64,000 nucleotides of DNA, from contig NW_026262745.1 of NCBI RefSeq assembly GCF_021869535.1, forward strand, positions 63,178,001-63,242,000, in the 5' to 3' direction. This stretch comes from Mytilus californianus. Taxonomy: Eukaryota. The notes beneath the pieces were generated by a model that did not search any database, was not told the origin of the DNA, and worked only from the letters and a program-made list of their open reading frames with translations. Shown here one piece after another: positions 648 through 57,351 of the stretch (within the stretch, counting starts at the first letter, position 1; the number at the start of each line of letters is the position of its first letter). The translations under genes and the position numbers were made by a program.

Positions 648-2562
648 CTTTAAACAATATCAGAATCGCTACTGCTACTATCTTCATTACTGCAAAAAAC
701 AATACCAAATATTTTGATAAATGATGGCGGCAACTGCAAGGAAACATGAACTTATCACAACTCACTGTATAGTACAATGTATTGGGACATGGTCCACCAT
801 CTTTGAAAACAATAAATTGCACTGCAACGGCAAGATATATATACCATGAGACATTTGACGAAAACCCTAAGATCAATAATACATATTGTTTTAAGGAAGA
901 CGACATGTCTCGAAAGCATTGGTTTATCAACTGTCGCGCGTTCGGCCTACTGTAAACTCTTTAGCGGTGATCTTTTCAGAGGACTTTGAAGGTAATATCA
1001 GATCTGTTTAGTAAAAGATCATTGAAAACCAAACATTGCAAAAAAAAAACGATGTGTAAAAAAACAGCTTCAAATGTAAGTCTTTGTGATAGAATAAGCT
1101 ATGTGTTAAGTGTATGAATGATATTTCAGATAAACATAAGTAGTCTACTGCGTTGGTGATACACTTCAAGACAAAACGTCTGGATGTAAAACCTGATAGA
1201 AGATACAACGCCTATTATTTCGTAAGTCAATTGTGTCATACAACTCATCAGGGGTAATAATCAATTGTCGGGAAAAATATTTTTTAAGTTGGAGCATTGA
1301 AAACAAAACCAAAGATCTTTAAGCATTTGGAAAGGCACAAACACTTATAACCGGACGACAAAAAAACAATTTCAGAATAAAGAGATCTCGTTGCTACATT
1401 ACAAATACAAGAAGATGTGATATGAGTGCCAATGGAACCCTCTCCACCAAAGTCCCAATTTGTAAAAGTAAATCATTATAGGTCAACGTACGGCATTCAA
1501 CAAGCCTTGTCTCACACCGAACAGCAAGCTATAAAGGGCCCCAAAAATGACTAGTATATAACCATTCAAACAGGAAAACCAACGGTCTAATCTATATAAA
1601 AAACGAGAAACTAGAGACACTAATGAACCACATCAACAAACGACAACCACTGAACAACAGGTGTAAAAGGTAGTTAAAATACTAATTTCGCAAATAAATA
1701 GTCATGCATTGTTTTTAAACCATAAATCATAAAATATGTAAAGCTCAAAGCTCTGTCATGCATCACTCAGTAATATGATGATGCTTTTTAACAATACAAT
1801 TTAATACATCTCTTAATTGTGTGATCTAACGAAACCCGACAGTTATTGTCTCAATTTATTCTCCTTTTCTTATATTATAGAATTTTGTATTAATGGCAGA
1901 TCTTGTATAGTGTTTGTTAACTTTATTAAAAACTTTTAGATTTCTAAGACTGTATAAAAATGATGCATTTTATTTCAGTAGACCTGTACATGTTTGTTGT
2001 TTCTTTTTTATGTTATTCTCGTGGGTTTTCTTTAATTTTTGTAGTTCACTCATTTTTTTTTTGTGGTATTCATGCTGCTTAATCGTGTTAGTAATCTCGA
2101 CTCTTTTCATCATTGAGCTTGGTGGATTAGATTGCGTTTTATTTTTTTGTTTTACTTATCCGGGGACGATGTTTGCTCTTTATTTTTTTTTTTTTTTGTA
2201 CTCATGACTTCTGCATCTTTTGTTTGTTCTTTTTTTATGTATAGAATCACTTAAAATATTTGACACAATTATTTAGAAGCAATTATTACATGTGACTTAG
2301 TGAAATCGTCGTTTGTTAAAACTTCAATATATTTGAACTAATTTTTACATATCTTAATTAATACAATTATCACCAGAAAAAGAAATTGTTCTGCGTTTCT
2401 AAAGTAGAGATGACGCTTTTGTTTCTGTTTTCCCTATCAATTAATCTGTTGTAAAATTCTTTGTTTTCAATCTTATGTACTATAAATCATTTTATTTTTT
2501 AAAATGTATTTTTAATAGAAAATTGTTTTTACTTTAATATGAAACTTACCAATCTTAAACAT
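648..2562 (-). CDS. Paralogue A, 5' end only (coding exons 1-2, signal peptide); gene continues off the left edge
   Basis: Exon 1 at 2550-2562 (ATG TTT AAG ATT G|GTAAGT) and exon 2 at 648-689 (TTTGCAG|TA ATG AAG ... AAA G|GTAGGT) give MFKIVMKIVAVAILILFK. Same 13+42-nt layout as B, C and D. Confidence 0.75.
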
Positions 2563-2990
2563 CTTTATTCCCCTAATATTTAACATAACAGTACAATATC
2601 AAGGTATATAGTTACTTTTATTTGTAAAGCAGGGCATAAAACATATACAAAATATACAAAAAAAAACATTATTCATATTCATATCATCATAGTTTTCCTC
2701 TAATCAATATGTATTAAAGTTTAAATAGTTGTATTATATCTATATCAATAAGTTAAACAAACAAGTTTAACGATTTTGGAAATTTTGTATTTTTTTTATA
2801 ATAAACCTAAAGCTATAATTTGTAAAAAAAGTATTTTAACCCATTTATTCGGTCAAGTAACTTTTTTAAACGACAAAAATTGATACTTTTGTTGAATTAA
2901 ATGAAAAAAACAAATACAAAGACCAAATGTTGTTTACATTATGTTTTAAAGACAGTCGTATGTTAAGTTTTGTTATTCGTATTTCAGACT
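2563..2990 (-). promoter_or_regulatory. Conserved 5'UTR/promoter block, five copies (2563, 12855, 17960, 33986, 53009)
   Basis: Alignable block directly upstream of each exon 1. Contains GGGCATAA, ATTCATATTCATATC and TCAATAAGTTAAACAAA motifs; TATA-like TATATATAAA on the minus strand in B (about 13000) and C (about 34125). Confidence 0.6.
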
Positions 2991-3129
2991 CAGGACATAG
3001 TATGTTTCACCTATTGTTTTCTATTGACACACTACAAGCCATTGTTGGTATTGTCAGTAATTGTCAATTAACACCTACTGGTAACTCGAGGCTATCATGT
3101 GATCAGTAGTTAGTGCTTTGATAGTAACA

Positions 3130-3366
3130 CGATTTGTATCATGTCTTTCTTAGATTTTCGTTCATAAATTTTTCAACTATAAACGAACTGAGATTTCAAC
3201 TCCCTCAGACTTACTTGACCTTAGATGTTGTGGCTATTTTTGTATGTTTTTGTATGTTTTTGTTGGTTATGTAGTGCTTCAACTGTTTCGGTTTTTTATA
3301 CATCCTCGGCTTCCAAGTATTCAGCTATGAGCGTTCCTGATGATTGTAAATCTAGAAAAGCGCCTC
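3130..3366 (+). mobile_element. H2 hammerhead-bearing repeat upstream of A (duplicate at 53580-53806)
   Basis: GCGUUC-CUGAUGA-(short stem II)-GAAA-AGCGCC-UC; homology stops at the cleavage triplet. Other H2 copies: 8631-8805 (-), 28520-28691 (+), 57489-57800 (-, two hammerhead relics 212 nt apart). Confidence 0.65.
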
Positions 3367-3435
3367 GATGTAGTTAAGGTAGATTTAAATCCATAGACTT
3401 TTTTTAACAATTTGTCAAAATGTAACATGCAAATA

Positions 3436-3784
3436 TCTAGACCGATTGTTTCCTATGTTACAATATTATAGGGCGGAAGAATTGTGTTATGGTATCTTAA
3501 ATTCATATCTAGATCAAGACAATCATACTTGGAAATGCTAAATATGACTTTGAGTTTGTTAATAAAAAGTGTTACTTCAATTCGAGTCAATACAATGTTC
3601 TGGATTAACTTTCATAAAGAGAGCTCAGACCAACAAATTGAAAGCCAACGGTAAATATGACCTTCGATACGTGAGGAGCTATATCGTTTATATAACCATA
3701 AAAAAATTAGAACAACGCGTTATTAAGGTAGGTATTTCTTCCGCCCTATTAGATTGTAACATAGCAGTAAACAATCGGTCTAGA
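3436..3784. mobile_element. MITE-like element with about 45-bp imperfect TIRs
   Basis: TCTAGACCGATTGTT..GGGCGGAAGAA pairs with TTCTTCCGCCC..AACAATCGGTCTAGA. Absent from the duplicate region at 53.9 kb. Confidence 0.7.
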
Positions 3785-4689
3785 TCTTTCATAAAATGGT
3801 GGATTAAAACTGGTTTTATAGCTAGCTAAACATCTCACTCGTATGAAATTCGCATAGAAATTCCGTTATATTGACAACAATGTGTGAACAAAACAAACAG
3901 AGCGAAACAGTGATAATTCTTTCATAAGTGTACAACACCTTTTAACGATATGTCTTTACCGTATTGTTGACATTTTGACATTGTGAAAGTAACAAGTACT
4001 TGGTTACTGTTCTGTGAAAAAGATCTACATTTGGATAAATGATAAAAAGATTTACTGTGCACGATTAATGTTTCAAGCTAAGCTCGACGAACATATACTT
4101 ACATAAAACAAATTAAAAAGGTTGTTTTGAATTGAAGGTCAACAAAACTATCTTAACATATCTAAATGTTCATACGATTGTTTAAAGAAAGGGACCTAGT
4201 CATTGGCTTTTTTATTTATCTCTTGATGTTCTGTCCATAATTGGATTTGATAATGAGGTCAGTAAAAATTGAGAGTCTGCTCGAATTATTTAGCAAAATA
4301 GAAAACTATACAAACTTCTTACAAAGAGGCAATTAATTGACTTGTGATTTCCGAATAAATACTGTGTTCAGAAATATCAGAGTATTTATCTTCGAAATAA
4401 TGGAATCGATGTATATATGAAAAAAATAAGATTTGGTTAGACTGTTAATGAGTTTATTCTCCACCAAAGACAACATGACCTAAAAGCTAACCCTTTTTAT
4501 TGGCAAACATACTAGTATTTGAATCTAATATCGGAAAAAGAGTTTAATCTAACATCGTGAAAAGAGTTAAGCCTTTTATCGGCAAAGGCTTCTTTGTGAC
4601 ATTAATCTTTTGTAATATATAATTGTTGTCTCTGTCTTCTTAAATCTTTATCAGATTAAGTATAAGTTCCCATTTTCAATGTCTGCGTT

Positions 4690-7600
4690 TCAACTGGTAC
4701 CCAGTTTCGTTAGTAGTGTACACACTCTGTTTATAAGTGATGCACTGTCTAGACACAATAGCAAAGATGCAATTGAAATCAAAATGGCAATGCCTACAAA
4801 TCCAATACTTGCTGACGATTTTCGTGAATCCCATGCAGAAGTGTGTTTTCTCGTAAACGCTGATGTTTTTGATCTGTCAACTTTAATCTCATTTACTAAT
4901 TCGTTGATACTTTCTTCCAATGACATTTGTTTGGTTACATTGTTACATGTGCAGACACAATATGGTCTTTTAACTGAAAGAAATACAAAATAATTAAAGA
5001 GACATTCTATTAAACTGTTCAATATAAGACTTAATATATTTTATCAAACGTTCCTTTAAGAGTAAGTATAGTGTTTAACAAACTGAATTGAGTCCACGTG
5101 TACAGAGTGCATTAACACACCTGTCTTAAATTACATTTTCACATTGACTTGACTTGATAAGTAGTGAACAAATTCAAAAAGACTGAGCCGCAAAACAATA
5201 TTGTTTCAAAGCTCTATTTTCAGGTGGCTGTTTTATGCCATAATTAACAATTGAAACGATGTATTTTTCATAAGCCATATTTGATAGAAGCCGTCGTTCT
5301 TAAAATCATTTTTAATATCGCAATTGCTAAATGTTGTAAAAACTGATCAAGCAATTAAAATCTTCATTAGTACAAATATTCTATGAATATCAATTTGTCG
5401 TTCATTTCCTCATTTATTGATTTGATGATGCATTCATATATAATTTTATTCACAATCAACTTATCTTTTCTATACCTGCGCTAATTGTTGTAAATTCATT
5501 CTGTGTTGTTTGATCAATTGAAGATTTCGATATTGATATGCTGTCGAGTTGAGATGTTGTTGTATGAAGATCAGTCGATGCTTCTTCTTCGGTAGATGTC
5601 ATGTGGTGTTCAGTTGTTGCTGGTAATGTTGTTTCTGTTGTCTTATCTGCAGATGAAACTTTCAAAGAAGTTGTTTCTTTTTGTGTAGATGTTAGATATT
5701 GTGCTGTTGTTTCCTGCTTGGCTGTCACACATAAAACACAATCACTTATAACAGCAGATCCACAATTGTCATACGGTGGCACAATCAAGGCATTAGTGTC
5801 TTTATTTACTTAAAACAAAAAAACTTTTTTTTTTTTATGCATTTTGATATTGAATTTTATGCGACTGTCATACAAGTGAGAGATTAAGCTAGCTATAAAA
5901 CCAGGTTTAAAACATCATTTTCTACATGAGAAAATGTCTGTACCAAGTCAGGAATATGACAGTTATTATACTCATTCGTTTGATGCGTTTGAGCTTTTGA
6001 TTTTGCAATTTGATTAGGGACTTTCCGTTTTGAAGTTTCCTCGGTGTTCGGTATCTTTGTTATTTTACCTTTGATTCTCTTCATTCGTGTTTTGTACATT
6101 ATTGGTAGAAATTACAAGATAAGATAAACATTTAAAAGAAGGTAAACCAAATTATTAACTTTTTCTTAATTAACTGCGTATACTCCGTCATGATACATAA
6201 CAATATTAAACAAATATAGTGTGTACCGTATTTGGTATTTATTGAACAAGATATATTCCATTTTACTGAATTCTTTAAATGAATTCAGTATTATTAGTTT
6301 ATTTATCTTTGATGATTTGTTTTTGTTTCCGTATCTATTTATTTATTTATTCATATATTTACGTTCTAAATACAAATAAAAGATAAAAAAATCTTACATT
6401 CAAAGTAACACCTCTTAATATAAAGATCTTCAGCCATAACAGAAATCTGATCATTTTTTAATCGGAAAGGATCATCAAAGATATCATACATCACACATTT
6501 AGGTACAGACGGGGTAAAAGCAAATCCCCAGCATAAAATTTTAGGATCACAAAAATCTTTACAATCTTGTGCAGTTCCAAAGTCTAGTTTAGTGAATCCA
6601 CTCATTCCAGTAGTTACCTTGCTTTCGGTTTCGGTATCATAGGAAATTCCAGAATTACATATAGCTGAAGGAAAACATTATATCAGTGAATACAAATATG
6701 ACACGTTATTTATACATATATGATAGTATAACTCAATATTACTAACAGATCTTTGGATATAAATATAACAAGAAAACAAAACAATGTTAAACTATCATAT
6801 TAAATTATTAAGTTTTTTATTTTATCAGCAATATATGACAATTTACATTTAAAAATAGGAAAGGAAAAATCGTCCCTTTCGTTGTAAATTTTTTTGTATA
6901 GAGTTTCTCGTGTAAAACAGAAATATCTAAACCTAGAAGAGGACAGTGAGTGTTGTCAATATTAACTTACTATCGCATCTATCTCATCAAACTTCAAATA
7001 AAGGATACAACAGATATAGGGAGCACTTGAGTTTACCACCAGTTTTTTTGTGGGGTTCGTGTTGCTCAGTATTTAGTTTTCTATGTTGTGTTTTGTGTAC
7101 TATTTGTTGTCTATTGGTCTTTTTTTTAGCCATGGCGTTGTCAGTTTATTTTGGACGTATGAGTTTTAATGTCCCTCTGGTATCTTTTGCTTCTCTCTTA
7201 TAGTGTTAAGCATATATATTTCCTTATATATTGACTAACATCTATAAACTGACAATGATGGTCAGTTGAGAACAAAACTTTTCGACAAAAGAGATGTGAT
7301 CGGCCCAATTGTATAAAATGTCTATGTAGCAACTATCCACCGCCTTAATATGGAGCATACATCCCCCAGTTGATACGATATTAATAGCTTGCGTTTGCCT
7401 TCATGATTTCCTTGACAGAGAGTTGCTGTCCTGATTACAAGATAGCTTTGGCACCGTTGTAACGTTTGGTGAAATTGAAATCTTCCTTTCGAAAATGTTT
7501 GGCACAATCATTCATGATGATTGACCGTTATGGAATATACGTTTCACAGTTGAAGACGGATATGTTCAATATGTCGTAACCATAAGCTCTTTCTCGTTTC

Positions 7601-10600
7601 CGTCGAAGATGATCTACATGTACCAAATTAGACGAATCACTGGGCATTTATTTACCTGAGAAAATCGACGGTTGACACACGTTTTTTCTAGGTTGGTCAG
7701 TCTATAGTTTTATATCTTCTGTGTTTTTTTCAGTTGTTTGTCTTTTGATCGATTTTCCTTTTTTCTTTTTTCTTTTTTGCAATAGCATTGTCAGTTTATT
7801 TTCGACTTTTGAGTTTGAATATCCGTTTGGTATATTTCGCCTCTGGTTTACATGGATACTTAGCCTTACGCTGTAAGCAAAGTATATTTTGATACAGTCA
7901 ATTGTATAATAAAGATAATTCAATCGTGTTGAAATAAAAATAAAATCCTCTGTCCTCATATCTATTTCAGACCATAATTTTCAATCATTAAGAATTAATC
8001 ATACAGTGTAGGCAATACAAAACTCATAAAAAATAACTGTATTCATCTTTGTTGTGGAAGATGTATTGGTGCAGTAGCTTTCACAAAATGAGTGGCAGAA
8101 GATGCATTTGGGGGGGGGGGGGGGGGGGGAGGGGGTCGAAATCAAACGCCGAAGAAAAAATCAGCACCAGTCCCCAAATTGCTATATATATATAATTTGG
8201 GGACTGGTGCTGATTTTTCTTCGGCGTTTGATTTCATATATATACAAGGTCATATATGTCAGAGATATTTCATAATCATGATAAACCAAATCATGATAAT
8301 GGTAAACCAAATCATGATTGTGAAATAATTCTACATTTTCTTAATCATAAAAACTTTCTAAACTGGTCGACCGGGTAATGGGTTAAATTTAAGCAAGTAC
8401 ATTTTGTAAATCAAAGTGTATGAATGCGGTTTACAGAATATAAAATAATAAGCCAAACAATTTAGGAATAGCTTAAATGCCCCAAAAATGAAGAATACAG
8501 GAATGATAATTATTTTCAAGTAAACGGTATAAGTACATCATATCATTGTAAATTGCCAAAAATTTATTACGCACAGTTCAATAAATCAACACTTAGCTGC
8601 AACATGAAGATATGACTTCATACATGTCGTGCGTCTGAAGTCGGTTTGTTTATTTAAACTTTATCAGAAACTCTCAAATCCCAAACACCTGAAAGCCCTG
8701 GATGCATAAATAAAAAGACACATTAGTGCCTCTATGACTAAATGAAAACAATAAAAAATAGCCAAAAATAATAAAGGGTCAAATTTAACTTAAGGAGTTG
8801 GAACATTTCCCTTTGCTTAATTTATTGATTTATCAACAGGAAATTATCAAAACACTGACAACTGAGCTAATGGTAGCAGTTAAGACTAACAGATCGCCAA
8901 AAATTATTTTGAGGTCAACAATATAATGCAACAAGGATTGACCTAAAGTGGTTTTGGTTGTTCTTTGTATAATCAATTTATTTTCACCTTTCGGAATGGG
9001 ATGCTCATGAAAGGTTTTCTTCTCTTGGTAAGTATCGGCAAAGCAAATACCAGATGTTCTTTCTTTTATTGGATTGTATAACAAAGAAAAAAATTAATGT
9101 TCATTACCTGACACCAAAATGTTCTTTCATCAATTCTGTTGTATTCTTTCTTATGGAGAAGAAGTACTTTTGGTGTATTAAACTTTTCTAAATATTTTTT
9201 TATAATTTCTCGTTCTAGATTCAAAATTAAAACAGTATAGATACATTTAATAGGAGATGTTTATGTTCTGTTGAAAAAAAATATATATTTGTTTATACAA
9301 TGTATAATGTAATAAAACATGATTAAATGTTTAGACTACAGAAGTATTTGAGTAGAGTGAGTCTGTTTGGATCCTTTCTGTATTTTGTAAAACGAAGAAA
9401 CATATACTTCAAAAATGGACTTCTCCTTTGAATATATATCTTGCATGTGAAATCCTCGATAGTACCACACTGTTTCGAAAAACATCCCAACAAGCAAGCC
9501 AGAATAGAAGCAGCTCAGTAGCAGTTGTTGCGAATGATATTTTACTTTCTGCTATAGTTTGACATAAATTATTTATTTAGTCTGACGTCCTTCATCATAT
9601 TGGACGTCCACACGTTTTATCTACCTTTACAGACGAATGAGCAAGTTTTATCGGTCAAGTTCAAATATTTACAACTGCTTTCGAAGACCTTGTCTCAACA
9701 TAGATGCAAATGACAATTGACCAATTGAACAGATACAACATAAGTTGATCTTACTTGTATCGGATTCACATATAAATTGTTTTAAGTCTATTCCACATTC
9801 AGCTAAGAGCCAATGCATGTTTTCGTCATCTACCTTGACATAAGAGCATAAATCATCATAGCCACCAGTCAATACAGGTGATAAGTTAAAATACCATGGG
9901 AACCAAAATGATGTCAAGCAGTCAGTCGTCCATATACGTTTATTCGATCGATTTGGATCTGGAACATGTAGTCCTATCCAAATTTCTCCTTCAAAGTCGG
10001 AATCTCTAAAAATTAAACGAAAAAAACCCAGATATTAATCAGGTGCATTCCAAACTCTAAGCCATGCTAAAACATAACTTAGAATGTTAATATGCATATT
10101 CAAATAATTTTTGGATTTTTAAGACATTTTGATCTCCCCCATCATTGAAGAGACATTTGTCGTTGAAATTCGCAATAGGTGCAGGAAAAATTAGTACCGT
10201 TACTGTTATTCCAATGTAATGACAAATTTACACAATATTTTGGAGAATTTATTCCCTTCTATATGTGTGTTCAGCTATAAGGTTTTAAAATACCTGATGT
10301 GATTAAGGTATACAAAGATAACATATTGTTGTGTTTCCAATTAACTTTTTTAGAGAAACCATAATGTAGTAAGGTTAACTTGCAACGTCGAGTAGTCAAT
10401 ATGAAACATAAATTAACTCAAACCCGACAAACAACTATAAATATTTTACCTGTGCACCAAGAAAAGCTAAGATTTTGATCGATGAAATTAACTTTTGATA
10501 TGAACATACAGTTCGCTGTTGTCGCAGATGTAGATATTAGAAAATGAATTAACAGCGAAGAGTTTTCATACAGTCCCTTATGACAGTTTGATGAAATAAA

Positions 10601-12854
10601 GAGTCTTTACAGTTACATAGTATGTATGTCAGCCTTAAATGGAAAACCACTATATGTATTGAAATACAAAATATTCACGTGTCTAATATAGCTTTGTGCA
10701 GAAGTAGATGTTTCGCCTGTCGATCAATTTTCACTAAATGTTGTCCTATACTTTTACAATATTGGTTAGCATTATTCCAAGTCAATGGTTCGGTAAATAA
10801 GGTTGTAGAAGCTTCGGCCAAGACATCATGATCTGCAAAAAAAAATCAAACTGAATCGATGTTCCCTATTTCATTTGATTACAGCTTTATTTTATGTCAA
10901 ACTGAAATGTTCCGATGCATAATTTTCCAAACTTGTAGCTTCATTAAAATACGACTGTACTTGCACGAAATGCATACAACTATTAATAAATCATTATTAA
11001 TACAGTATTTGCAAGATATCCATAAATCGAAACGAAAATAGTCCCAATTATTTTGTTCGTGTACTGTTCGTACCATCTGAATAACAAACTGAGATCGATG
11101 CAGCATGTTGTTTATTTATAGAAACGAAAGTCTACTACTGACTACTATTGATCGTGTATTCAAAATCAACTACGCCCACTGACTTAATATTAGATATACA
11201 TTGTTTCCACTTGACTGCTTTAGACAAATGGTATTCCTAGAAATATACAGGAGGTAAGATAATTATAAAAATGGTCATCATAATTGTGATAATGTTATGA
11301 TTTGTTAACCACATCCTTAGTAAGTAAAATTTAACCATTGACATTATGTTCATCTTTGGGTACTATAAGCAAATTTGCTCATAGTTTACTATTCATAACT
11401 CATTAGAATCAGAAACGTGGCGGCGCAATGATATAATCACTTATGGCGATCTGTTTTAACGTTCTTCATTCGAAAATATACGATAGAAATGAGATGAGAT
11501 TTTTGTAACATGATTAGATATTTTTTGTTCTTTTATAGATCAATCAGAAAGCTTTTTCGTCGAATATAATAGATATTAAATAACATAGGATTTCAACCAA
11601 AAAATCCAAGTTTTATAAATACATACCTTTAATTTCTATCAGAATCAGCACTACCATTATCGTCATTACTGCAAAGATTGGCAAGTATTTCAATAATTTA
11701 TTCATATAACAGATAACTCGTTAAAACTTTATTTCAGTAAATAGCGACACAGTTTCATTTCAAGAAACATAAACAAATATTGTTCCATGTATTTCAAAGA
11801 CATATCTGAAGTGAACCTTTAAAACAATAATCGACATACATATGCAAATACTGATTGTCGTGTCAGCAACAGTTATGAAAAAAAATTCATTTGTTACCCC
11901 TGTCGGTCCGTCCGTCCGTTTTTCCATCCGTCCAATTACATTTACATTTCACATAAATGTTTTTGAATCATTTGATGTAGTATTGATGGCAGATCTCGGG
12001 TAGTGTTTGTTAAATCATTTTATACGTTTTATATTTAAATGTGTGTATCTTGTATCATTATACACTTAATAGTTGAAGACCGTATGTTGACCTATACGTG
12101 AGAGGTGTCGTTTGTTACAATGAAATTCGCGTGAGTTACTCTCTGTTTGGTTAACTGTCTCATTGACATTTTCATATATCTCCTTCGATTCGTATACTTC
12201 AGGTTAAAATATGAAAAGTGTACGCTTAATTTTGTATATAATCTAATTTTGTAACTAGATATTCTAGCAGAACCTCGGCAGTGAGTAGGATAATGAATAA
12301 ATTATGTCGTTCTATATTTTTTGTCTTTTTTAATGTGATATTAATATTAGCTAACGATCCCATACTCTTTTGGTCGATTGTGGCATCATCGAATGTGCAC
12401 TTGCCATGAGCCTAACGACAAGTACCACTAGCGGAGCTTGATCTTGCTATGATGGTTTATTTTATTCGTTTAGACATTGTACGATGTTGGATGTCTTTCT
12501 GTACCATCAATTTCGATCGCAACTTCTGTTTTTCTCACTTTGTGAATTTATGAAGCTATTGACACAGTCATTTGAAAGCACCACTTAGTGCAATCGACTA
12601 TTCATAAGCTTAAATGTACTTGAATTTATTTTTGAATACTAGTATATAACAGTTTTTATGTTAACCTCGTACGATAATTATACAAAGAAAAGCGTATCCA
12701 AAGCAGCCATGGCGGTTTCTTTTTTTTCTATTTTTGACCTTTCAATTAAACTGTTCAAGCATTATTCTTTATCTGAATATGTTTTAAGATATGATATTTA
12801 TTTAAAAAAACAAATTGTCTTCGTTATAATGAGAAACTTACCTATCTTAAACAT
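4690..12854 (-). CDS. Paralogue B: intact CTLD-PAN-mucin-TM type-I membrane protein, 447 aa
   Basis: Exons 12842-12854, 11627-11668, 10679-10832, 9755-10005, 6398-6664, 5476-5808, 4690-4973. All junctions GT-AG with matching phases (1,1,2,1,1,1); 1344 nt with no internal stop. CTLD motifs TWNNANQYC, IWIGLH, DLC, W-x4-C, FICES; PAN exon with 6 Cys (DCKDFC..CWGFAF..KCVMY..KRC); T/S-rich stalk; TM IGFVGIAILISIASLLLCL. Confidence 0.9.
5864..5963 (+). ncRNA. Twister relic, family Z (element about 5845-6075)
   Basis: Perfect 9-bp P5 ACUGUCAUA/UAUGACAGU and CUG-UACCAAGU-CAG; P2 and T1 damaged. Confidence 0.65.
7015..7850 (+). mobile_element. Two decayed Naiad-like 3' fragments (3'UTR 7015-7200; RT C-terminus plus 3'UTR 7245-7850)
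   Basis: Match to the reverse complement of 60116-60760, including a DNDGQLRTKLFDKRD relic. Confidence 0.7.
8108..8135. repeat. Poly-G tract
   Basis: Seen directly. Confidence 0.9.
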
Positions 12855-42235: not shown

Positions 42236-42340
42236 ATTATTTATTTATTGATGTATTTATTTGTTTTCTATTTATTTATTTATAAATTTATCTATTTATC
42301 TATTTATTTATTTATTTATTTATTTATTTATTTTTTATTT
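42236..42340. repeat. (TATT)n microsatellite just downstream of D exon 5 (AATAAA-rich on the gene strand)
   Basis: Seen directly. Shorter versions occur at the same position in B (about 6335), C (about 23375) and E (about 57020). Confidence 0.9.
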
Positions 42341-44924: not shown

Positions 44925-45230
44925 CTACTGTCGATTGATTGACAGTTGGTTGCTTCACGTCCAGTGACAAATATGTCATGCATAATTAACCTGTAGAGAG
45001 CGTGACATTATATCTAAAAGAGGTATCGGAGTTAACGTCCTCACTCTAAACGGACGGGACTGCGTACTTGTACATCCCGCACATCTAAACGGACTCCCCA
45101 CTTTGGCAATGGTTAACTACCGTTCGGAACAATACCAATAGTGACCATATTTCTATTCCCTTGATCACATTTGAGAGGTTGAGTACTGTCGAGACGAGCG
45201 CGCGACCAAAGAGACAGTTATGAATCTGGA
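44925..45230 (-). mobile_element. Possible decayed SINE
   Basis: Minus strand has a GTCCG..GACGTTAA..CCG central motif and a ..GGACGTGAAGCAACCAAC..(AATC)n tail; the tRNA-like head is not clearly resolvable. Confidence 0.35.
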
Positions 45231-46325: not shown

Positions 46326-46468
46326 GATATTATTACGTGATTATTTCTGTGTTGGCTTTGTTATTGGTCCGAGGCTTGCTGTATTGACCTGAGGCGAAGC
46401 CGAAGGCCAATACAGCTGGCCGAGGACCAATAACAAGGCCAATACAGAAATAATTACGTAATGATATC
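46326..46468. repeat. About 143-bp imperfect palindrome capped by GGC-GAA-GCC
   Basis: Arms GATATTATTACG..CTGTATTGACCT and AGGCCAATACAG..CGTAATGATATC. Confidence 0.85.
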
Positions 46469-49400
46469 TTTATTAATTAAATATGTGCATACAGTGTTTA
46501 TCTTTTTTTTGTGTTTTATTTCCTTTCACAAGATTTTAACATGTTTTACATTGAAATCGAACTATCCAAATTTGAGTTTTCTTTTATAAGCTGCAATGTC
46601 AAACGATTTGGTGCTGTTTAGAAGAGTCTTCTACATTTTTTGATGATTTGTTAACCCTTTTCAGTCACTATAAAGTATTACAATACATATTCAGATGCAA
46701 TACATAAATAGTAATTGGAAAGGTACTGCCATTGCATGAGAGATTCAGAAACAAAATGACTAAATAAAACTAGGAGTTGAATATGATTGCCAATGAGTCA
46801 ACTATCCATAAAGACTTGATCAATAGATTACAGGTCATCCTTCAACAATCCATATGAGGTTCGGGTTGAAAAATATATGATACAAAAACATGAGATGCGA
46901 AAGTAAACAGTAAATTGAAATGCACTCATTAAACTGATAAACTGTTTTAAATAGTTATGAGGTTGACAAAAAATGAGCTTTGTGATAATCTACAGACTCG
47001 TTTCCCAAACCTGAAATAATTCAATTGTCTGGTTATAAAATGCTTTTTCAAATGAATGTGACCGTCTTCAGCCTGAAATATTTGCAACACTGAACGTTTT
47101 GGCATGTTTATGGTGAGTAAATAAAACAGCGTCTTCCAAACAACAGTTTACATTACGTTGTGTTTATCATGACTTTCGATCTAAAAACTAGAGACGTTCA
47201 GAAATCCTGTATTGGACGGATGAGAACTCGGCCAATACAGAAAAAAATCCATATTGGCCGAGTTGACACTTTTGTATAGCAAAGGTAGTTATCATCTATT
47301 AAGTCCAATAATAGAGTAGTTAATTAACAATGATAAATATTGATTAGACAATAATTGCTTATTCAAAATTAGAATCATGTGCAGAAAGTTACAGTTCGTT
47401 ACATTTTGTTGTTATCATTTTCGTAATAGGCATTTTGGTTCACGTTTTTTAACGTCAATATATATAATAAGATGCTACAACTTTAGAGTGTGTTTAACAG
47501 TAAAATGTTCAAATTTAAAACGTCACTAGGCATAGCTGACGTCAAATTATAATTATGACCAATATCAATCCGACACCAAACGAACCACACATTGATAATT
47601 TAAGAAATAAATCTATTGTAACATGTTCTTTATGTTAAGAAGATGTGGTACATGTGGTATGAGTCTCCATCAAAGTCACAATGTATCAAATGTTAATAAA
47701 TATAGGTCATACTACGGCCTCCAACACGCCGCCTTGGCTCATACCGAACAGCAAGCTATAAATGGCCGTTAAATGAACTATAACAGTTCAAACAGGAAAA
47801 CAGATGATCTTATCTATATAACAAAACGAGAAACAATTATAGACCACTCCAAAAAAAGACAACCACTGAACAACAGTCTCCCGACTTAGCACAGGTGCGT
47901 GAACATGCAGCGGATTCACCTTTAACTGCGACAGTAGTTTATCATTACAATATAAAAACACGCACTATAAAATATCAATTGAAATTGCTTAACTCAATCA
48001 CAAAAGACATTTAAACTAAAATAAGTAAACCTTTACTGATATTGGCTTTTTCAAATATTTTAGCAATTTATCTGTCAATTTGTTATACGTTGCTATTGAA
48101 CGGTATACGATGTCCATTAATATTTGAAAGGCAGACATTTATATTTGATTGTGTCTAAACTTTCTAGATAACACATGGTTTTACAATATAAAACTTATGA
48201 AATATATTTAAACTTGCTGTTTACAAGAAAAAAATTTCATTTGAAATGAAAAATATGGTGCCGTTTAAAAACAGTTGACGTTAACAATACTTTTTCATGA
48301 CACGCATGTGTATTTTGTGTCTTATAGGAAGAAGCATGTGTAAAGATTTACAACATTTCTAGATTAAAACGATGTATACTTATAAATGACTGGTATTACT
48401 TTTTAAAAATTTCTAAGGAAAACTTAATCCTGTGTTTACAAACATTGCTGTATCGTAACCTTTAATGGAATACATCTGTATGTGTTTTCCGTGATACCTT
48501 GCAGTCTGGTTTTTCTCTGATAATTTTTCCAACAAAAAAAAAAGCATACAGTCAAGTGTAGCATGTCATTATGAATCAAAATAGGTAAACAAATTTAGTG
48601 TCAATGATGGCATAAGATGGTTTAAGAAAATTCTTTTAGTCCTTAGCATGTCTAAGCTGTAATATTTTTTATTTCCGATTTTATTGACAGTGACCAAAAG
48701 AAAAACATGTATTCTTGAAACACATTATCAGCCGATATCTCCATTTATTTAAATGCGAAAAAAAATCACAATTTTCAGGCAAAGTTAAAAATTGACCGAC
48801 TGTTACCTTGTCTCCCCTTTAGGTCCAAATTTACTTCCAATTACTATAATTGAACAACCCAAACATTAGATGAAAGCCAACATAGGAAATAAATCAAATA
48901 TATGAGACCGTCAGTTAGCATCAAAGTTATAATGGACTTAATTTAGTTCTATGCAGTTTACATCATATTTTTCTATGCATCATTATATAATTGTTTTAAT
49001 CTTTTTTTTCTGTAGAGGTAAAACATTTTGAAAATGATATATGAAGGAAGCCAATTTTCGTTTATTTTTATCTCCTTTTGAAAAGGCACCATATTACCTA
49101 TATCTTTACAAGATATACACACAGTTCTGTCATTTTCTTTATACATATAACATTACTTTAATCTGAAGAAATTGAAATACTAATATATTTACATCTCCAG
49201 TATAGCTTTTTGTAAGTAAATTTCCTTTGCTTGTTGAGCAATAGCCACTAAATTTTGTCCTATACTCTTACAATATTTGTTAGCATCGTTCCAAGTCATC
49301 GGATCAATGAATAATGTTGTGGAAGCTGTAATCAGGACATATTGATCTGAAAAGAAAACATCGCTATATAATGTTGGTCCTTTTAAGTTTCATGATGTAT

Positions 49401-51908
49401 CTTTACTCAAGAAATTTGAATTAAGTTTTAAAATTGAAATAGTTGTCTTCAAAAATGAAATGACTATATTAAGATATGTCTCTTATAGACAGGAGAAATA
49501 ATCGTGAGATGACAAAACTGCTCAGATTCCTGTTATAATTCTGATTTGCATAAGACGCGTGACATTTAATTAATGTGAATTTGTTTAGAAAGGCAATGTG
49601 TACAAGGAAAACGCATAAATGGTTAATAAGCTACGAATAACGATATTTTTGGTGCAAAATGTTGCTGATAATCATTTAGGTAAAATTAAAGGAACGATAT
49701 TAATGTGACATTAGTTTTCATAGGTATATAAGAAAATAATGTCTGGCAAAACTTGGCTAAAACATTATCAAGATACAATATAAATATATAATTTTTTTAA
49801 AATAATTAATATTTTATATTAATAAATAACCGTGTACGATCGATGAGAATTCGTTTGAAAATGTACAGCATTTTTTTTTACTTGTTTAAATGTGTAGAAT
49901 TTGAGCAATTAAAGACATGCAAAAACAGGAAAATATAATCAATAATTTTGTTTGCAATGCATAACATATAAGAGAAGTTAGGCTTAAAAATATATTGTTA
50001 TAACATTTGATACCAATCTTAACGAAACCGACTTTGGTTCACCAGATGAGCATTTCGAGAAAAAATGTATCTTCAGTAATGCTCTTGGCTAAAATATTGG
50101 AGAATCCAACACAAATTCAAAAACTGTATTCAAAGTATTGCCAAAGTACACGGGATCAGAGACTTGCGTGAAAGTGATATATGTATTCCTTAATTCAAAA
50201 TAACTTAAAGTAACATTCAAGTCTTTAATCCCAATTACACAATATACGTATTTTCATGCCAGTATCGAAGTTTTATCTATTGGGGTTGTTAAACCAGTAA
50301 AATATTAATTGCATATTTTTTTGTTCACTGAGATAATTGAATAAGCATACTATGAAACATTGTTTGAAAGCTAATTTATAGCAATTCCAGTAACGTCCCT
50401 TTGCAAATAAGGTTTTCAATTGTATAAAGAAGAATTACCCTTTTCATATTTATTTGTACGCATATATTCTATTATTTTCGATCTCAAAAATTAATTTCTT
50501 AAATTCTACATTGAAAATCAAACAATTAAAAGAAGATGAGACAGTTAAAGTGAATAAACTTTAAAGGATTTTGACAATATGTGTTTGTAAGTGTCATCCA
50601 GGCCTACCTTTATACGATGTCAGAATCGACACTGCTATTATCTTCATTACTGCAAATAAATAACATATATTTCAATAAATAATTCCAACCGCATGTAAAC
50701 ATGACTTTTCCACATCTCTTTATGTAGTACAACGTATTTGGACATGGTCTTAGAAAACAATATCTTGCAATGTAATGACAAGATATTCAATGACACGCTT
50801 GAGGCAAACAATACGATCAATACTAACAGATGTTTCAATAAAACGACATGTCTCGAAAGCATTTGCTCATCAACACTTGGAAGGTCATCTTATGTCTGAA
50901 CTAGTTCAAGATCAAACATTGTCCAAAGCGGCTACAAATGTAAGTTCATATTTCGTTGGGATAGATTCAACTAACTGTTTGGAATTCTTCTGTATGAATG
51001 GTATTTCAGGTAAACATAGGTAGTTAACTACTGGCATGGTGGTACTCTTGAGAACGAAATGTCTGCATGAAAAACCTAATATAATATGCAACGAGAGTGC
51101 CAATGAGACAACTCTCCATCCAAGTCACAATTTGTAAAAGTAAACCATTATAGGTCAAAATACGGACTTCAACACGGAGCCTTGTCTCACACCGAACAGC
51201 AAGCTATATAGGACCCCAAAAATGACTAGTGTAAAACCAATCAAACATGAAAATATCGGTCTAATCTATATAAAAAAAGGAGATTACTTATGAACCACAT
51301 CTACAAACGACAACCACTTTACAACAGGTGTAAAGGCAGTTAAAATACTAAGTATGCAAAAAAAAAAGTTATTCATTGTTTTTCAACCATAAACCATAAG
51401 ATTTATGAAGCTCAAAGCTCTGCCATGCAGCACCCAGTAATATGATAATGTTGTTTAAACAATTCAATTTAATACATCTTTTACTTGTGTGATATAACGA
51501 ATTTCGACAGTAATTTATTCTGCTTTGTTTTAGATTATAGAACTTTGTATTAATAGTAGAATTTCTTATAGTGTTTGTTTAAGTTATTGACAACTTTTCG
51601 ATTTATAAATCTCTACAAAAATGATGCATTTAGTATCACTGGACCTGTGCATGTTTTTTTTTTTTGTTATACTATTTTCGAAGGTTTTCTTTATTATTGT
51701 ACCTTTTTGTATTCTTGTCTTTAATGTTTGCTAATGTTATTTGTCTATATGTTTTTTTTTTTTTTGCTTCTTTTTTACATATTTGTTTGTTTTAATAGCG
51801 ATTAAGATTATAACACAATGTTGACTGCTGTACCCCTATTTTTTTACATTTTTGCCTATTATGTCTCTTTGGTTTGGTATTGGTGTCAATATAATGGAAT
51901 TTGATGCA

Positions 51909-52008
51909 ACTGTCAAACACGTGAGAGGTTTAGCTTGCTATAAAACCAGGTTCAATTCACCGTTTTCTACATAAGGAAATGCATGTACCAAGTCAGGAAT
52001 ATGACAAT
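51909..52008 (+). ncRNA. Near-intact twister, family Z (element about 51840-52115)
   Basis: GUGA-GA-GGU ... CAA-UUC-ACC-[P3]-G-CAUG-UACCAAGU-CAGG. T1 and T2 intact; one P4 mismatch; position -1 is C. Confidence 0.7.
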
Positions 52009-52554
52009 TGTTATCCATTCGTTTGATGTGCATGAGCTTTTGATAATGCCATTTGATTAGGGACTTTCCTTTTTTTAATTTTCCTCGGAGTTCAGTGTTT
52101 TTGTGATTTTACTTTTCACACAACTTTTTGTGGTATTCATGCTCCTTAATCTGGACTCTTTTCTGCATTGAGTTAGGTTGATTATATTATGTTTTATTGG
52201 TATGTTTATTAGTCTTGGGACGAGGTTACTTTTTTTTGTACTCATGACTTCTGCATCGTTTTTTGTTCTTTCTTTATGTACATACATAGAAAAACTTGCA
52301 ATATTTTACACAATTATTTGGACGCACTACTTACATTTGACTTAGTGAAATCGTCGTTTGTTAAAACTTTAATATATCTGAACTATTTTTTTTTTACATA
52401 TCTAGGATTAATACAATTATCATCAGAAACAAAAAAATGTTCTACGTTTCTAAAGTAAAGATGACGTTTTTATTTCTGTTTTCCCTAACAATTAATCTGT
52501 TGCTAAATACTTTGTTTTTTTTATCTTATATACTATTTATCATCTTACTTTTAA

Positions 52555-52946
52555 GGATGTTCGCTACTCTGTTTCAAAATAACAAGCTTCTTAAAAGACT
52601 GTTATCAATTGAAAGAAAATAAATAAAGGAACTAAAAAAGCAGAATAAAATGAAGGGTCCGTCTGCTTGTTTTCGAGATATAAGCCATTGGAAATTTGGC
52701 GGGAAGTGATTTCTCTCTAGATTTTTCATACATTTAACATTGGCACCTTTTCTCTTTCATAAACTATGAAAAAATTACAAGGATTTAATAAGATTTTCAA
52801 ATATAGCTTTTTAAACTATATGTCATGAAATTATGAAAAGAAAAGTAGGGGTTAGCAGGCAAAAATTTTTAAGGGCATTAAATGGATAAAATCAGAGGAT
52901 TCCTAATATCTGGCCAACATACAAAAAACAAGAGGAGCGAACATCC
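52555..52946. mobile_element. 392-bp MITE with TTAA target-site duplication and GG..CC termini (Kolobok-type signature)
   Basis: TTAA-GGATGTTCGCT...AGCGAACATCC-TTAA. The empty site is visible in paralogue A at about 2497-2505. Confidence 0.8.
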
Positions 52947-54776
52947 TTAATGCATTTTTAATAGAAAATTGTTTTTACTTCAATATAAAACTTACCAATC
53001 TTTGACATCTTTATTCTCCGTAATATTTAACATGTTTAACAAAACAATACAATATCAAGGTATATAGTTACTTTTATTTGTAAAACAGGGCATAAAACAT
53101 ATACAAAATATACAAAAAATATATTATTCTAATTCATATCATCATAGTTTTCCTTTAATCAATATGTATACAAGTTTAGATAGTTATATTATTTTTTTAT
53201 CAATAAGTTAAACAAACTAGTTTAACGATTTTGGAACTGTTGTAAATTTTTTATAATAAACCTAAAGCTATAATTGCAAAAAGTATTTTAACACATTTAT
53301 TCGGTCAAGTTACTTTTTTAATTGAAAAAAAAATGATACTTTTATTTAGAAATTAAATAAAATTAATAAGCAAATACAAAGACCGAATGTTGTTTACATT
53401 ATATTTTGAAGACAGTCGTATGTTATTTAAATTTCAGACTCAGGACATAGTATGTTTCACCTATTGTTTTCTATTGACACACTACAAGCCATTGTTGGTA
53501 TTTTCAGTAATTGTCAATTAACGCCTACTGGTAACTCGAGTCTATCATATGATCAGTAGTTAGAGCTTAGAAAGTGACACGATTTGTATCATACGTTTTT
53601 AGATTTTCGTTCATACATTTTTAAACTATAAACAAACTGAGATTTCAACTCCCTCAGACTTTGTTGATCTTAGATGGTGTGGCAATTTTTGTATGTACTT
53701 GTTGGTCATATATTGGTTCAGCTGTTTCGGTTTTTTTTTACATCCTCGGCTTCAAAATATTCACTTTTGAGCGTTCTTGATGAAGATAAATCTAGAAAAA
53801 CACCTCGATATTACTAAGGTAGATATAAATCCATAGACTTTTTTAAAAAATTTGTCAAAATGTAGTTTATAACATACAAAAATATAATAAAACGTATGGA
53901 TCAGATGGATTCTGTTTCAAGCTAGTGAGCGGTGCAGAACTGTCAGATTGTTATAGATGATGTATGGAGGCTCCTATTTCCTGTAAAAAAGGGAAAACTA
54001 AACCAGAGAATTTGAAAATAAAATAAGATGATTTGCTTTCAAAAACTAATATATTATGGAGTCACAGAACTCGTTTTCTTGCTACAAAACGAAATAGGTA
54101 TATTTTTAACACATTCCCTTATAAAAGTAATTTTACTTTAGTTATCTGTCCTAAAATGGCAAAGTTACAAAAATAAATCAAACAAAACATATTTAATGTA
54201 TTTGTAAGAAATAGGGGTAAAAATATTTCAAAAACCCATTTTTTCTTCATTTATTTTAAAACTTTACAAATGAATTACATTCTTCTCGAAAATTTCCCGT
54301 TTTATGAAAAATTGATGTTTTGTCCATAATTGGATTTGATAATGAGGTCAGTAAAACATGAAAATTGAGAGTCTGCCAGAATTATTTAGCAAATTAGGAA
54401 ACTATAGAAACTTCTTACAAAACGCAATTAATTGACTTATGATTTCCGAATAAACACTATGTTCAGGAATATTAGAATATTTATCCTTGAAATAATGGAG
54501 TCAATGTATATATGAAAAAATAAGATGTGGTATGACTGCTTATTTGTATATTCTCCACCACAGACAGTATGACGTAAAAGCTAACCCTTTTTATTGACAA
54601 ACAGATTTGAATCTAATATCGAAAAGTAGTTTAATCTAACATCGTTAAAAGAGTTCAGTCTTTAATCGGCAAAGGGTTCTTGGTGACAGTAATCTTTTGT
54701 AATATATAATTGTTGTCTCTGTCTTCTTTGACCTTTATCAGATTTAGTATCAGTTCCGATTTTCATTGTCGGCGTT

Positions 54777-57351
54777 TTAACTGGTACCCAGTTTCCTTAG
54801 TAGTGCAAGCACTCTGTACATAAGCGATGCGCTGTCTAGACACAATAGCAAAGATGCGATTGAAATCAATATGGCAATGCCTACAAATCCAATACTTGCA
54901 GACGATTTTCTTGAATCCCATGCAGAATTGTGTTTTCTCGTAAACGCTGATGTTTTTGATGTGTCCACTTTAATCTCATTTACTATTTCGTTGATACTTT
55001 CATCCAATGAAACTTGTTTGGTTACATTGTTACATGTGCAGACACAGTATGGTCTTTTAACTGAAAGAAATAAAACATAATTAAAGAAACATTCTATTAA
55101 ACTGTTCAATATAAGTCTTATATTTTATCAGACGTTCCTTTAAGAGTAAGTATAGTGTTTATCAAACTGAATTGAGTCCAAGTGTACATGCATTAAATTT
55201 GTCTTACATGACATTTTTACATTGACTTGACTTGATAAGTAGTGAACAATTTCAAAAAGACTGAGCTGCAGAACAATATTGTCTCAAAGCTCTATTTGCA
55301 GGTGGCTGCCTCATGCCATTAATTACCAGTTGAAGCGATGTATTATTCGTAAGCCATATTCGGTAATAGCCGTCATTCTTAAAATCTTGCCTTTTAATAT
55401 TTTGTCGTAAACACTGTTTACCCCCTAAACATCTTCATTGGTACAAATATTCTATGAATAACAATTTTTTCCTTCATTGCCTCATTTATTGATTTAATGA
55501 TGCATTAATTTACCATTTTATTCATAATCAATGTATCATTTATATACCTGCGCTAATTGTTGTTAATTCCTTCTGTATTGTTTGATCAATTGAAGATTTC
55601 GGTATTGATATGATATCGAGTTGAGATGTTGTTGTGTGAAGATTAGACGATGCAACATCTACTGTAGATGTCATGTGGGGTTCAGTTGTTACTGGTAGTG
55701 TTGTTTCTGTTGTCTTATCTGCAGTTGACACTTTCACAGAAGTTGTTTCTACTTGTGTTGATGTTAGATATTCTGTTGTTGTCTGCTCCGTGGTTGTCAC
55801 ACATAAAACACAATCACTTATAACAGTAGATCCACAATTATCATACGGTGGAACAATCAAGAAATTAGTGTCCTCGTTTACTTAAAACAAAAAACATATT
55901 TTTTATATGCATTTTGATATTGAATTTCATGCAACTGTCATACAAGTGAGAAATTAAACTAGCTATATAACCCGGTTTAATACACCATTTTCTACATGAG
56001 AAAATGCCTGTTTTAAGTCAGGAATATGACAGTTGTTATCCATTCGTTTGATGTGTATGAGCTTTTAATTTTGCGATTTGATTTGGGACTTTCCGTTTTG
56101 AAGTTTTCTCGGAGTTTGGTATCTTTGTTATTTTACCATTGATTCTCTTCATTCATGTTTTGTATATTATTTGTAGAAATTACAAGACATTTAAAATAAG
56201 GTAAACCAACCTTTCAAGCTTTTTCTGAATTAACTGCGAATATTCTGTCATAATATATAACAATATTAAACAAATATAATGTATACCGTATTTGGTATTT
56301 ATTGAATATTATACAATTATTGTGGCCTTTTATCTATTTCTTGCATGAATAGATATTTCTCGTATCACACTGCACGGAATGTGAAACGAGAAAGTGATAC
56401 AAAAATATGCGTTAATTTGAATGGCTTCTTCAGCATCACAAGACGATATTACGGCACTTCCATTGGTTATTCGTTAGGTCAATGATGACTTTCAAAGGTT
56501 AAGACGATGTACAGTTCGTCCATGGCAACGAACATTGTGATGTCTTCAATTATATACAAAACACTCACACATTTCACCTGACAATCTTCTTTGTGTCAAA
56601 TTTTATTACATTCTAAATCGTACAAAAAGTATTAAAATATCTGATGTGAAAGTTTGACATCGGAAAATGACATATGACGTCATACTGGAATGTGCAAAAT
56701 ACTGGATCAACATTTCGCGGAATTTTTAATTTTACACATTGAGAGTGTTGACCAGAAGAGAAATAGGTTTAACAACTTGTGAAAATTGGATATCACTTGA
56801 TATCAACCTCGTTATTTAATTTAGATAGTAATAATAATCTCGCCGTAGGCTCGTTTATCATTATATTGAAATTGAATAAATCGAGCTGATATCAAGCGAT
56901 ATCCCATTCTCACTGGTTATGAAACCAATAAATATATATTCCTGTTTACTGAATATTTTTATTCGATACAGTTTTATTTCTTCATTTATCTTTGATGACT
57001 TGTGTTTGTTTACTTATCCGTTTATTTCTTTATTTCTTTATTTCTTTATTCATTCTAAATTAAAAAAGGATAAAAATAACTTACAATCAAAGTAACACCT
57101 CTTTATATACAGATCCTCAGCCATAACAGAAATCTGATTATCTTCTAATCGGAACGGATCATCAAAAACATCATACATCACACATTTAGGTACAGAAGGG
57201 GTAAAAGCAAAGCCCCAGCATGAAGTTAAAGGATCACAAAAATCTTTACAATCTTGTTCAGTTCCAAAGTCTAGTTTAGTGTATCCACTCATTCCTGTAG
57301 TAACCTTTCTATTGCTTTCAGTATCATAGGAAATTCCAGAATTACATATAG
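54777..57351 (-). CDS. Paralogue E, 3' part (PAN, mucin and TM exons); upstream exons not found in the window
   Basis: Exons 57085-57351, 55548-55880, 54777-55060, with the same lengths as B (267/333/284 nt), open frames and GT-AG junctions. About 85% amino-acid identity to the PAN exon of B by hand alignment. Confidence 0.85.
55934..56033 (+). ncRNA. Twister, family Z; duplicate of the 5864 insertion
   Basis: Perfect P5; T1 reads UU/AA rather than CC/GG. Confidence 0.6.
56779..56913. repeat. About 135-bp imperfect palindrome capped by GCC-GTA-GGC
   Basis: Arms GATATCACTTGATATC..AATTT and AAATT..GATATCAAGCGATATC; apex at 56842-56850. Confidence 0.8.

Follow-up and report, generated by a model that had tools for sequence, protein, structure and literature searches.

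What might a mussel surface protein recognise when its lectin domain has lost the residues that hold sugar, and how would it report what it binds with a cytoplasmic tail of about 19 residues? The question is raised by a 64,000-nucleotide stretch of the Mytilus californianus genome (contig C165, positions 63178001-63242000 of a 1.65-Gb assembly; 31% G+C, no Ns), referred to here as the window, which carries a series of genes combining a C-type lectin-like domain (CTLD), a PAN/apple module, a mucin-like stalk and a transmembrane (TM) segment. The genes are real, form a tandem array, are restricted to Mytilus and evolve by birth and death. We lean towards an interpretation in which they encode type I membrane glycoproteins whose CTLD-PAN head has a protein or an unusual glycan as its ligand, with output passing through a terminal cassette shared with many other mussel genes.

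DNA and protein self-comparison, together with alignment of the flanks, reveals five minus-strand paralogues, all co-oriented and built on a common plan of seven coding exons. We refer to these as copies A to E (G0 to G4, in the same order) and give positions in window numbering. Peptides of corresponding exons match one another at E values of 1e-20 to 1e-69, far above chance. Copies B, C and D are the only ones complete inside the window; A and E continue into the flanks. The copies and their exons are as follows.

648-2562, minus strand: 5' part of copy A (coding part of exon 1, 2550-2562; exon 2, 648-689)
4690-12854, minus strand: copy B, complete and intact, seven coding exons
12842-12854, minus strand: copy B exon 1, encoding MFKI
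11627-11668, minus strand: copy B exon 2, signal
10679-10832, minus strand: copy B exon 3, N-terminal half of the CTLD
9755-10005, minus strand: copy B exon 4, C-terminal half of the CTLD, with SPV and WLL
6398-6664, minus strand: copy B exon 5, PAN
5476-5808, minus strand: copy B exon 6, Cys box and Thr/Ser stalk
4690-4973, minus strand: copy B exon 7, juxtamembrane-TM-tail cassette, stop codon included
20517-33985, minus strand: copy C, complete and intact, seven coding exons
33973-33985, 30790-30831 and 29692-29845, minus strand: copy C exons 1 to 3
27002-27243, minus strand: copy C exon 4, with SPS and WFL
23444-23719, minus strand: copy C exon 5, PAN
21764-22183, minus strand: copy C exon 6, a longer stalk
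20517-20827, minus strand: copy C exon 7, with a 28-residue tail, the usual stop codon being lost
40393-53008, minus strand: copy D, a pseudogene, seven exons
52996-53008, 50608-50649 and 49193-49346, minus strand: copy D exons 1 to 3
43036-43265, minus strand: copy D exon 4, with PPS and WFL
42379-42645, 41051-41383 and 40393-40676, minus strand: copy D exons 5 to 7
54777-57351, minus strand: 3' part of copy E (PAN, 57085-57351; stalk, 55548-55880; cassette, 54777-55060)

The limits of the array in a preliminary description of this DNA, 648 to 57351, prove to be true exon ends (the low end of copy A exon 2 and the high end of the copy E PAN exon), but copies A and E are only partial at those points. 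The 8 kb of the left flank supply the rest of copy A (exons 3 to 7, intact). For copy E, exons 1 and 2 and both CTLD exons, also intact, are found 1-7 kb past the right end of the window, the PAN-to-CTLD intron of this copy being long and holding a reverse-transcriptase fragment. The identical seven-exon phase pattern reported earlier for five co-oriented paralogues is borne out by exact splice sites common to all copies: exons 1 to 7 measure 13 coding nt, 42, 154, 230-251, 267-276, 333-420 and 284-311 nt, the outgoing phases are 1, 1, 2, 1, 1, 1 in every copy, and every intron is GT..AG. The PAN and stalk exons are symmetric phase-1 exons.

The seven-exon count depends on the position of the start codon. 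A conserved block upstream of each gene, ending in AAGATGTTTAAGATWG immediately before GTAAG, is exon 1, which codes for MFKI and has an outgoing phase of 1; the 42-nt exon 2 starts with TA and likewise ends in phase 1. Because exon 2 of copy E is without any ATG, and its M. coruscus orthologue has ATC at the usual exon-2 ATG, the exon-1 ATG is the start codon and seven coding exons is therefore the correct number. A six-exon map starting at the exon-2 ATG was considered and is ruled out by the conserved exon 1 and the ATG-less exon 2 of copy E.

The array is larger than the window, with at least nine minus-strand members carrying the full exon set between 63.148 and 63.321 Mb, about 170 kb. 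Seven of the nine have kept their splice sites and reading frames, and the other two, copy D and a copy at 63284727-63294205, each contain multiple stops. In copy D there are four in-frame stops (42587-42589, 41109-41111, 40621-40623 and 40513-40515, in the PAN, stalk and TM exons) and two stalk cysteines are lost; its CTLD exons are still open, and its orthologues are open in M. galloprovincialis (P0165) and M. trossulus (P0004). Within the genome, the CTLD and PAN of this family occur only on C165, at 62.96-63.37 Mb. Diverged plus-strand relatives flank the minus-strand array (C165:63342466-63348873, 63369834-63397990 and 62963140-62968100), with a CTLD about 40% and a cassette 54-58% identical to those of the main array; no PAN exon was detected at E 1e-5 in two of these three places.

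Relatives elsewhere were sought with HMMER using the PAN exon against 1.84 billion representatives, and by word-indexed searches using a full-length orthologue, the head profile and the cassette region of an orthologue. Apart from a few short unnamed fragments they occur only in M. galloprovincialis, M. edulis, M. trossulus and M. coruscus, and since several of the congener proteins sit together on single contigs, the array is common to the genus. All names of these relatives are automatic ("hypothetical", "uncharacterized", "Apple domain-containing", "C-type lectin domain-containing" or, wrongly, "MRC"), and literature searches by accession, architecture or motif found no paper on the family, so that its earlier designation as an orphan family, with no characterised relative, stands in a qualified sense. 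Taken together, the gene models of the four congeners contain every coding junction: P0168 begins at MFKI, P0170 and P0164 at exon 2, and the junctions from the CTLD through PAN and stalk to TM are spanned by P0162, P0004 and P0165. P0162, the M. coruscus orthologue of copy C, itself reproduces four junctions, from exon 3-4 to exon 6-7, in a model that lacks exons 1 and 2. Some congener models depart from the plan, M. edulis P0170 and M. galloprovincialis P0163 and P0168 including a PAN-less form with the CTLD joined directly to the stalk (the frame being kept, as PAN is a phase 1-1 exon), an exon-2-skipping form and one with two CTLD-PAN units; these may be isoforms or fusions, or errors of gene modelling.

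Exons 1 and 2 encode a signal peptide, for example MFKIVMKIVAVAILILFK in copy A, and exons 3 and 4 a single compact CTLD split between them. Proteins of the window were profile-searched exon by exon, and the full-length domain scores come from public congener orthologues. Each CTLD exon matches a different half of Pfam Lectin_C (profile positions 2-34 and 39-106); the scores are 22.3 and 19.2 bits for the single exons and 36, 30, 43.6 and 56.3 bits for the full-length orthologues P0007, P0006, P0005 and P0159 (cut-off 22.6). All full-length members contain WIGLH, YC (alpha1), LC(A/S/T), (E/V)C and F(I/M/L)C and keep the canonical C1-C4, the last CTLD cysteine being missing in two truncated gene models. 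When the head family profile was compared with the PDB, only CTLDs were matched, led by PLA2R (4.7e-22) and snaclecs (factor IX/X-binding protein, about 1e-9).

The sugar site is degraded throughout. EPN/QPD is replaced by SPV, SPS, PPS or SPG and WND by WLL, WFL or WHL, and the combinations noted previously were confirmed in copies B (SPV/WLL), C (SPS/WFL) and D (PPS/WFL). An acidic residue before the second cysteine is the sole survivor of the sugar-site ligands; on the standard mannose-binding protein A (MBP-A) scheme, only one of the five Ca2+-site-2 ligands is still acidic. The domain belongs to the CTLD superfamily by its Lectin_C match, WIGL motif and cysteines and, as judged from the replaced residues, is not a canonical Ca2+-dependent carbohydrate-binding C-type lectin. 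The long-loop region holds an extra invariant cysteine (NxC after WIGLH...W), which is why the ectodomain total is odd, at 17, and an odd number could allow a covalent dimer.

The CTLD is followed by a PAN/apple module, in agreement with the preliminary description. Its exon has six conserved cysteines, of which four are invariant in 14 of 14 aligned sequences and the first and last are absent only in a few fragmentary or truncated rows. Window exons score 24.3, 19.2 and 20.3 bits against PAN_1, and the orthologues 17-31 bits, with a cut-off of 21.4. With a PAN-only profile the 19 best PDB matches were all PAN/apple modules (among them plasminogen, the N domain of HGF, and the apicomplexan SML2, from Sarcocystis, and MIC4), at marginal E values of 0.002-0.05; the six-Cys pattern is likewise that of known PAN/apple modules. 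Exon 6 encodes a 3-Cys box and then a stretch that is 41-48% Thr, Ser and Pro.

Exon 7 encodes a CxCxC motif, an NVT site, an amphipathic helix, a basic stretch, a 19-residue TM helix, an Asp and a short tail, and is the best-conserved part of the genes, with 77-89% identity among paralogues. Many other genes carry the same cassette 3'-terminally, at 30-40% identity, in most cases directly after mucin-like repeats. In an alignment of 18 copies the A-x-D-x-R-x-S...G motif next to the membrane on its outer side is invariant, and so is an Asp with which the TM helix ends on the inner side. In a genome search with a profile built from this alignment, at least 150 scored copies, all with E below 1e-12, were found among 417 candidates on many chromosomes, further loci including L009-L023. 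No Pfam family covers the cassette in a Pfam search, and its look-alikes in the protein atlas are unnamed mollusc proteins.

Its invariant juxtamembrane motif, for example TSAPDNRVSA (L019:8056-8373) or TSAPDDR (L011:1904-2179 and L012:1637-1966), resembles TSAPDTRPAP, the core of the human MUC1 tandem repeat. The sole literature match for TSAPDNR is a paper on MUC1 glycopeptides (PMC3506546). The likeness is probably due to chance, but hints at a conserved O-glycosylation site.

The tail is 19 residues long, and 28 in copy C because the stop codon of that copy became CAA. The preliminary description of it as short and free of ITAM or ITIM (immunoreceptor tyrosine-based activation or inhibitory motifs) was right that it is short and that no such motif is conserved, the position of the tail tyrosine being N, H, D or Y across paralogues, but it put the lengths at about 17 and 26 residues and overlooked copy E, in which LMYRVL fits the ITIM consensus, five residues from the membrane and unconserved among copies. 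A signalling partner, then held to be necessary, is plausible because the tail is short, but the TM helix is without a charged residue of the adaptor-pairing kind and the tail belongs to a cassette found in at least 150 other mussel genes; the read-out is therefore probably generic and not specific to this family, and a need for a partner, if real, would extend to every member of the cassette superfamily.

The mature protein would thus be arranged, from the outside in, as a compact CTLD in which four of the five canonical Ca2+/sugar ligands are lost, a six-Cys PAN/apple module, a 3-Cys box, a Thr/Ser-rich stalk of 80-110 residues, presumably O-glycosylated, and the conserved terminal cassette with its CxCxC, putative N-glycosylation site, amphipathic helix, A-x-D-x-R-x-S, TM segment, Asp and tail of about 19 residues. 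We infer that the head, CTLD plus PAN, most likely binds a protein or a non-canonical glycan at the cell surface and that the stalk holds it off the membrane, a stalked-head logic that would be analogous to that of the vertebrate group-14 receptors thrombomodulin, CD93 and CLEC14A. Output would then pass through the shared cassette, by way of a generic partner, clustering or regulated release, instead of through a motif of the tail peculiar to the family. The type I surface-binding architecture and the non-canonical CTLD allow the word receptor in a qualified sense; the kind of ligand, display at the surface, glycosylation, any signalling and the tissue of action are all predicted from this arrangement.

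Regulated release could also be the whole function. The proteins might be precursors of shed soluble binders, with cleavage at A-x-D-x-R-x-S, 4-5 residues before the TM helix, setting the ectodomain free to serve in mucus or haemolymph as opsonin or agglutinin. Cassettes with otherwise only about 30% identity have the juxtamembrane residues without variation, the presence of the cassette on at least 150 genes with varied ectodomains fits a common processing enzyme as well as a common partner, and some congener models (P0005) are without a TM segment. We nevertheless consider this unlikely: the TM helix and its inner-end Asp are equally conserved and would not be needed for a mere release site, P0005 may be a truncated gene model, and cleavage at the motif is hypothetical.

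We compared the paralogues and orthologues by pairwise Nei-Gojobori estimates per exon, in 12-codon sliding windows and for orthologue pairs, the synonymous divergence (dS) between paralogues being about 0.5-0.7. For the seven intact paralogues, the ratio of mean non-synonymous to mean synonymous divergence (dN/dS) comes to 0.33 and 0.35 for the N- and C-terminal halves of the CTLD, 0.48 for PAN, 0.78 for the stalk and 0.25 for the cassette. No 12-codon window goes beyond a dN/dS of 1, and the maxima (0.7-0.8) fall in the first half of PAN. Copies C and E have one-to-one orthologues in M. coruscus, P0162 and P0166 respectively, with heads 92-98% identical (for P0166 and copy E, 92-98% in exons 3-6). 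The CTLD of copy E differs from its M. coruscus counterpart by eight non-synonymous and no synonymous changes, which is not significant. Positive selection was considered and rejected, as dN/dS never exceeds 1 at adequate counts in exons, windows or orthologue pairs. The structured exons are under purifying selection, diversifying selection is unsupported, and the proposal that the family is polymorphic finds no backing in these paralogue and orthologue comparisons (0.25-0.48 in structured exons, 0.4-0.6 between orthologues).

The same values bear on a role in gamete recognition or allorecognition, which the preliminary description put forward beside an equally hypothetical immune one. Mytilus acrosomal lysins are CTLD proteins, and restriction to one genus, a tandem array and a CTLD without a sugar site are circumstantially in keeping with such a role. 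The strong positive selection usual for such genes is unseen, no window exceeding a dN/dS of 1, and the heads share 92-98% identity with their M. coruscus counterparts, so that of the explanations discussed here we regard this as the most improbable.

They bear also on the idea that these are passive, non-signalling membrane mucins or adhesion molecules of the glycocalyx, the cassette a mere anchor and the head a sticky module of low specificity. A short tail with no conserved tyrosine motif, an uncharged TM helix and a near-neutral stalk (dN/dS 0.78) would all be expected of such molecules, and many cassette genes consist of little beyond mucin repeats and the cassette. Against this, the heads are held under purifying selection as distinct one-to-one orthologues across species, and the juxtamembrane motif and TM-end Asp are conserved beyond the needs of an anchor; we find the idea distinctly unlikely.

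The history of the array is mosaic, as seen in two further features.

1-6698 and 49932-57384: segmental duplicate, 77-87% DNA identity by blastn
17880-18200, minus strand: relic of an exon-1/upstream block, with the ATG region deleted and no gene downstream

The duplicate covers the PAN-to-TM exons of copies B and E and 4 kb downstream, including exons 1 and 2 of the next gene, and ends about 35 bp upstream of the PAN exon. Because its limit lies there, B and E have a younger common 3' half under older, different CTLD heads, and their dS is 0.14-0.22 in the PAN, stalk and TM exons vs 0.32-0.48 in the CTLD exons. The copy B head is nearest to that of the member at 63.31 Mb. Cassette dS between "orthologues" exceeds head dS, which argues for exchange among paralogues. 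The relic at 17880-18200 probably marks where an array member between B and C has been lost.

Several observations weigh against a set of functional, membrane-bound binding proteins. No RNA-seq reads fell on copy B exons in one run of the assembly's own study (about 6% sampled), nor did any in three contig runs whose RNA origin is unconfirmed. The mapping covered 4880-10879 only and neither supports nor refutes the junctions; the mapped reads lie only on two interspersed repeats, at about 5850-6070 and 7044-7200. All Logan-derived protein fragments read through into introns and are therefore genomic DNA. The PAN_1 score is below the Pfam cut-off in some copies. AlphaFold gave a mean confidence (pLDDT, predicted local distance difference test) of 29.8 for the P0162 CTLD-PAN head with 8 sequences and 44.6 for the copy B PAN exon with 14, and as both models are poor, the folds rest on sequence profiles. 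Finally, orthologue dN/dS values of 0.4 (C) and 0.6 (E) indicate only moderate constraint. Expression and splice junctions in M. californianus are accordingly predictions, drawn from conservation and the congener gene models.

The lack of reads on copy B might mean that the cluster is largely silent, decaying and dispensable, its copies kept by recent duplication and many of them becoming pseudogenes. Multiple stops in two of the nine members, the retroelement insertions in introns and the mosaic history with exon exchange point the same way. We judge this very improbable, as the structured exons keep dN/dS below 0.5 over a dS of about 0.5-0.7, splice sites and frames are intact in seven members, and orthologues are kept in at least four other species.

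The repeats under the mapped reads belong to two families. One, of about 200 bp, is interspersed in the introns and spacers of the array (5850-6072, 41685-41887, 51894-52116 and 55938-56136) and is an abundant transcribed mussel repeat: RNA-seq reads and contig runs cover it very deeply, with zero on neighbouring exons. The second (7020-7203, 22304-22540, 25054-25282, 31930-32164, 37200-37393 and 60116-60345) occurs in both orientations, has a Cys/Phe-rich open frame and carries RNA reads at 7044-7200. It often adjoins reverse-transcriptase fragments and is therefore probably part of one retroelement; the fragments are as follows.

60420-61616, minus strand: reverse-transcriptase fragment in the copy E PAN-to-CTLD intron (RVT_1, E 5.5e-6, below the gathering score)
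25843-26258: related reverse-transcriptase relic in the copy C PAN-to-CTLD intron
30297-30455: related reverse-transcriptase relic in the copy C exon 2-3 intron

Membrane-bound binding proteins with a non-sugar head, the interpretation that we favour, have parallels among known systems. One is category C of the bivalve-specific, multidomain CTLD-containing proteins (CTLDcps; Saco et al. 2023, PMC10140915), likewise lineage-restricted, uncharacterised mussel proteins that join a CTLD to other binding domains and belong to the large C-type lectin expansion of bivalves; a combination with PAN/apple goes unmentioned in that article's text and in the supplements consulted, whereas in the array family the CTLD is accompanied by PAN, a mucin stalk and the shared cassette. 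The nearest solved sequences are those of the mannose-receptor family (PLA2R, in which several domains are matched, and MRC2), whose CTLDs have also lost Ca2+/sugar binding. Those proteins contain eight to ten CTLDs whereas the array family has one, with no conserved endocytic motif in its tail; a Pfam search of full-length orthologues returned one Lectin_C and one PAN only, with no ricin-type or FNII domain. The family does not belong with MRC, and the UniProt name, which derives from that family, is an automatic label. Snaclecs, the best single-domain matches, are CTLDs that bind protein and not sugar and that have an extra long-loop cysteine, but they are secreted, loop-swapped heterodimers and the extra cysteine of the array family is at a different position.

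The overall design is also that of the vertebrate group-14 CTLD receptors (thrombomodulin, CD93, CLEC14A and CD248), which have an N-terminal non-sugar CTLD, small Cys-rich modules, a Ser/Thr mucin stalk, a TM segment, a short tail and protein ligands. There, EGF or sushi modules stand in place of PAN, and no sequence relationship beyond the CTLD fold was seen, so that the likeness is one of analogy and not of membership. Plant G-type lectin S-receptor kinases are an analogue of the order lectin, PAN and TM, but their bulb-type lectin and kinase are absent from the array family.

The shared cassette is a more unusual lead than the CTLD-PAN head, and the real novelty may lie there. Tentatively, and as a proposal that we think more likely wrong than right, the cassette would be a lineage-specific universal coupling module, placed at the end of at least 150 mussel genes (possibly about 400) whose ectodomains are unrelated. 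Hundreds of different surface binding proteins would then be read out by a single partner, sheddase or glyco-modifier common to them all, and the CTLD-PAN array would supply interchangeable heads joined to it by phase-1 exon shuffling.

Bivalves depend on germline-encoded recognition molecules, and their genomes are rich in lineage-specific expansions of lectin-domain genes whose functions are mostly obscure. The family described here is itself publicly predicted and is typical of bivalve receptor expansions, of a kind that mussel specialists would expect. The array offers a clean and well-delimited case, with the full exon structure, of a non-sugar CTLD and a PAN module carried on a mucin stalk, and shows chimeric copies made by exchange among paralogues, pseudogenes beside conserved orthologues, and a cassette that links the array with hundreds of other mussel surface proteins. 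If that cassette is a common signalling or processing handle, it would provide a single experimental entry to much of the mussel surface receptor repertoire.

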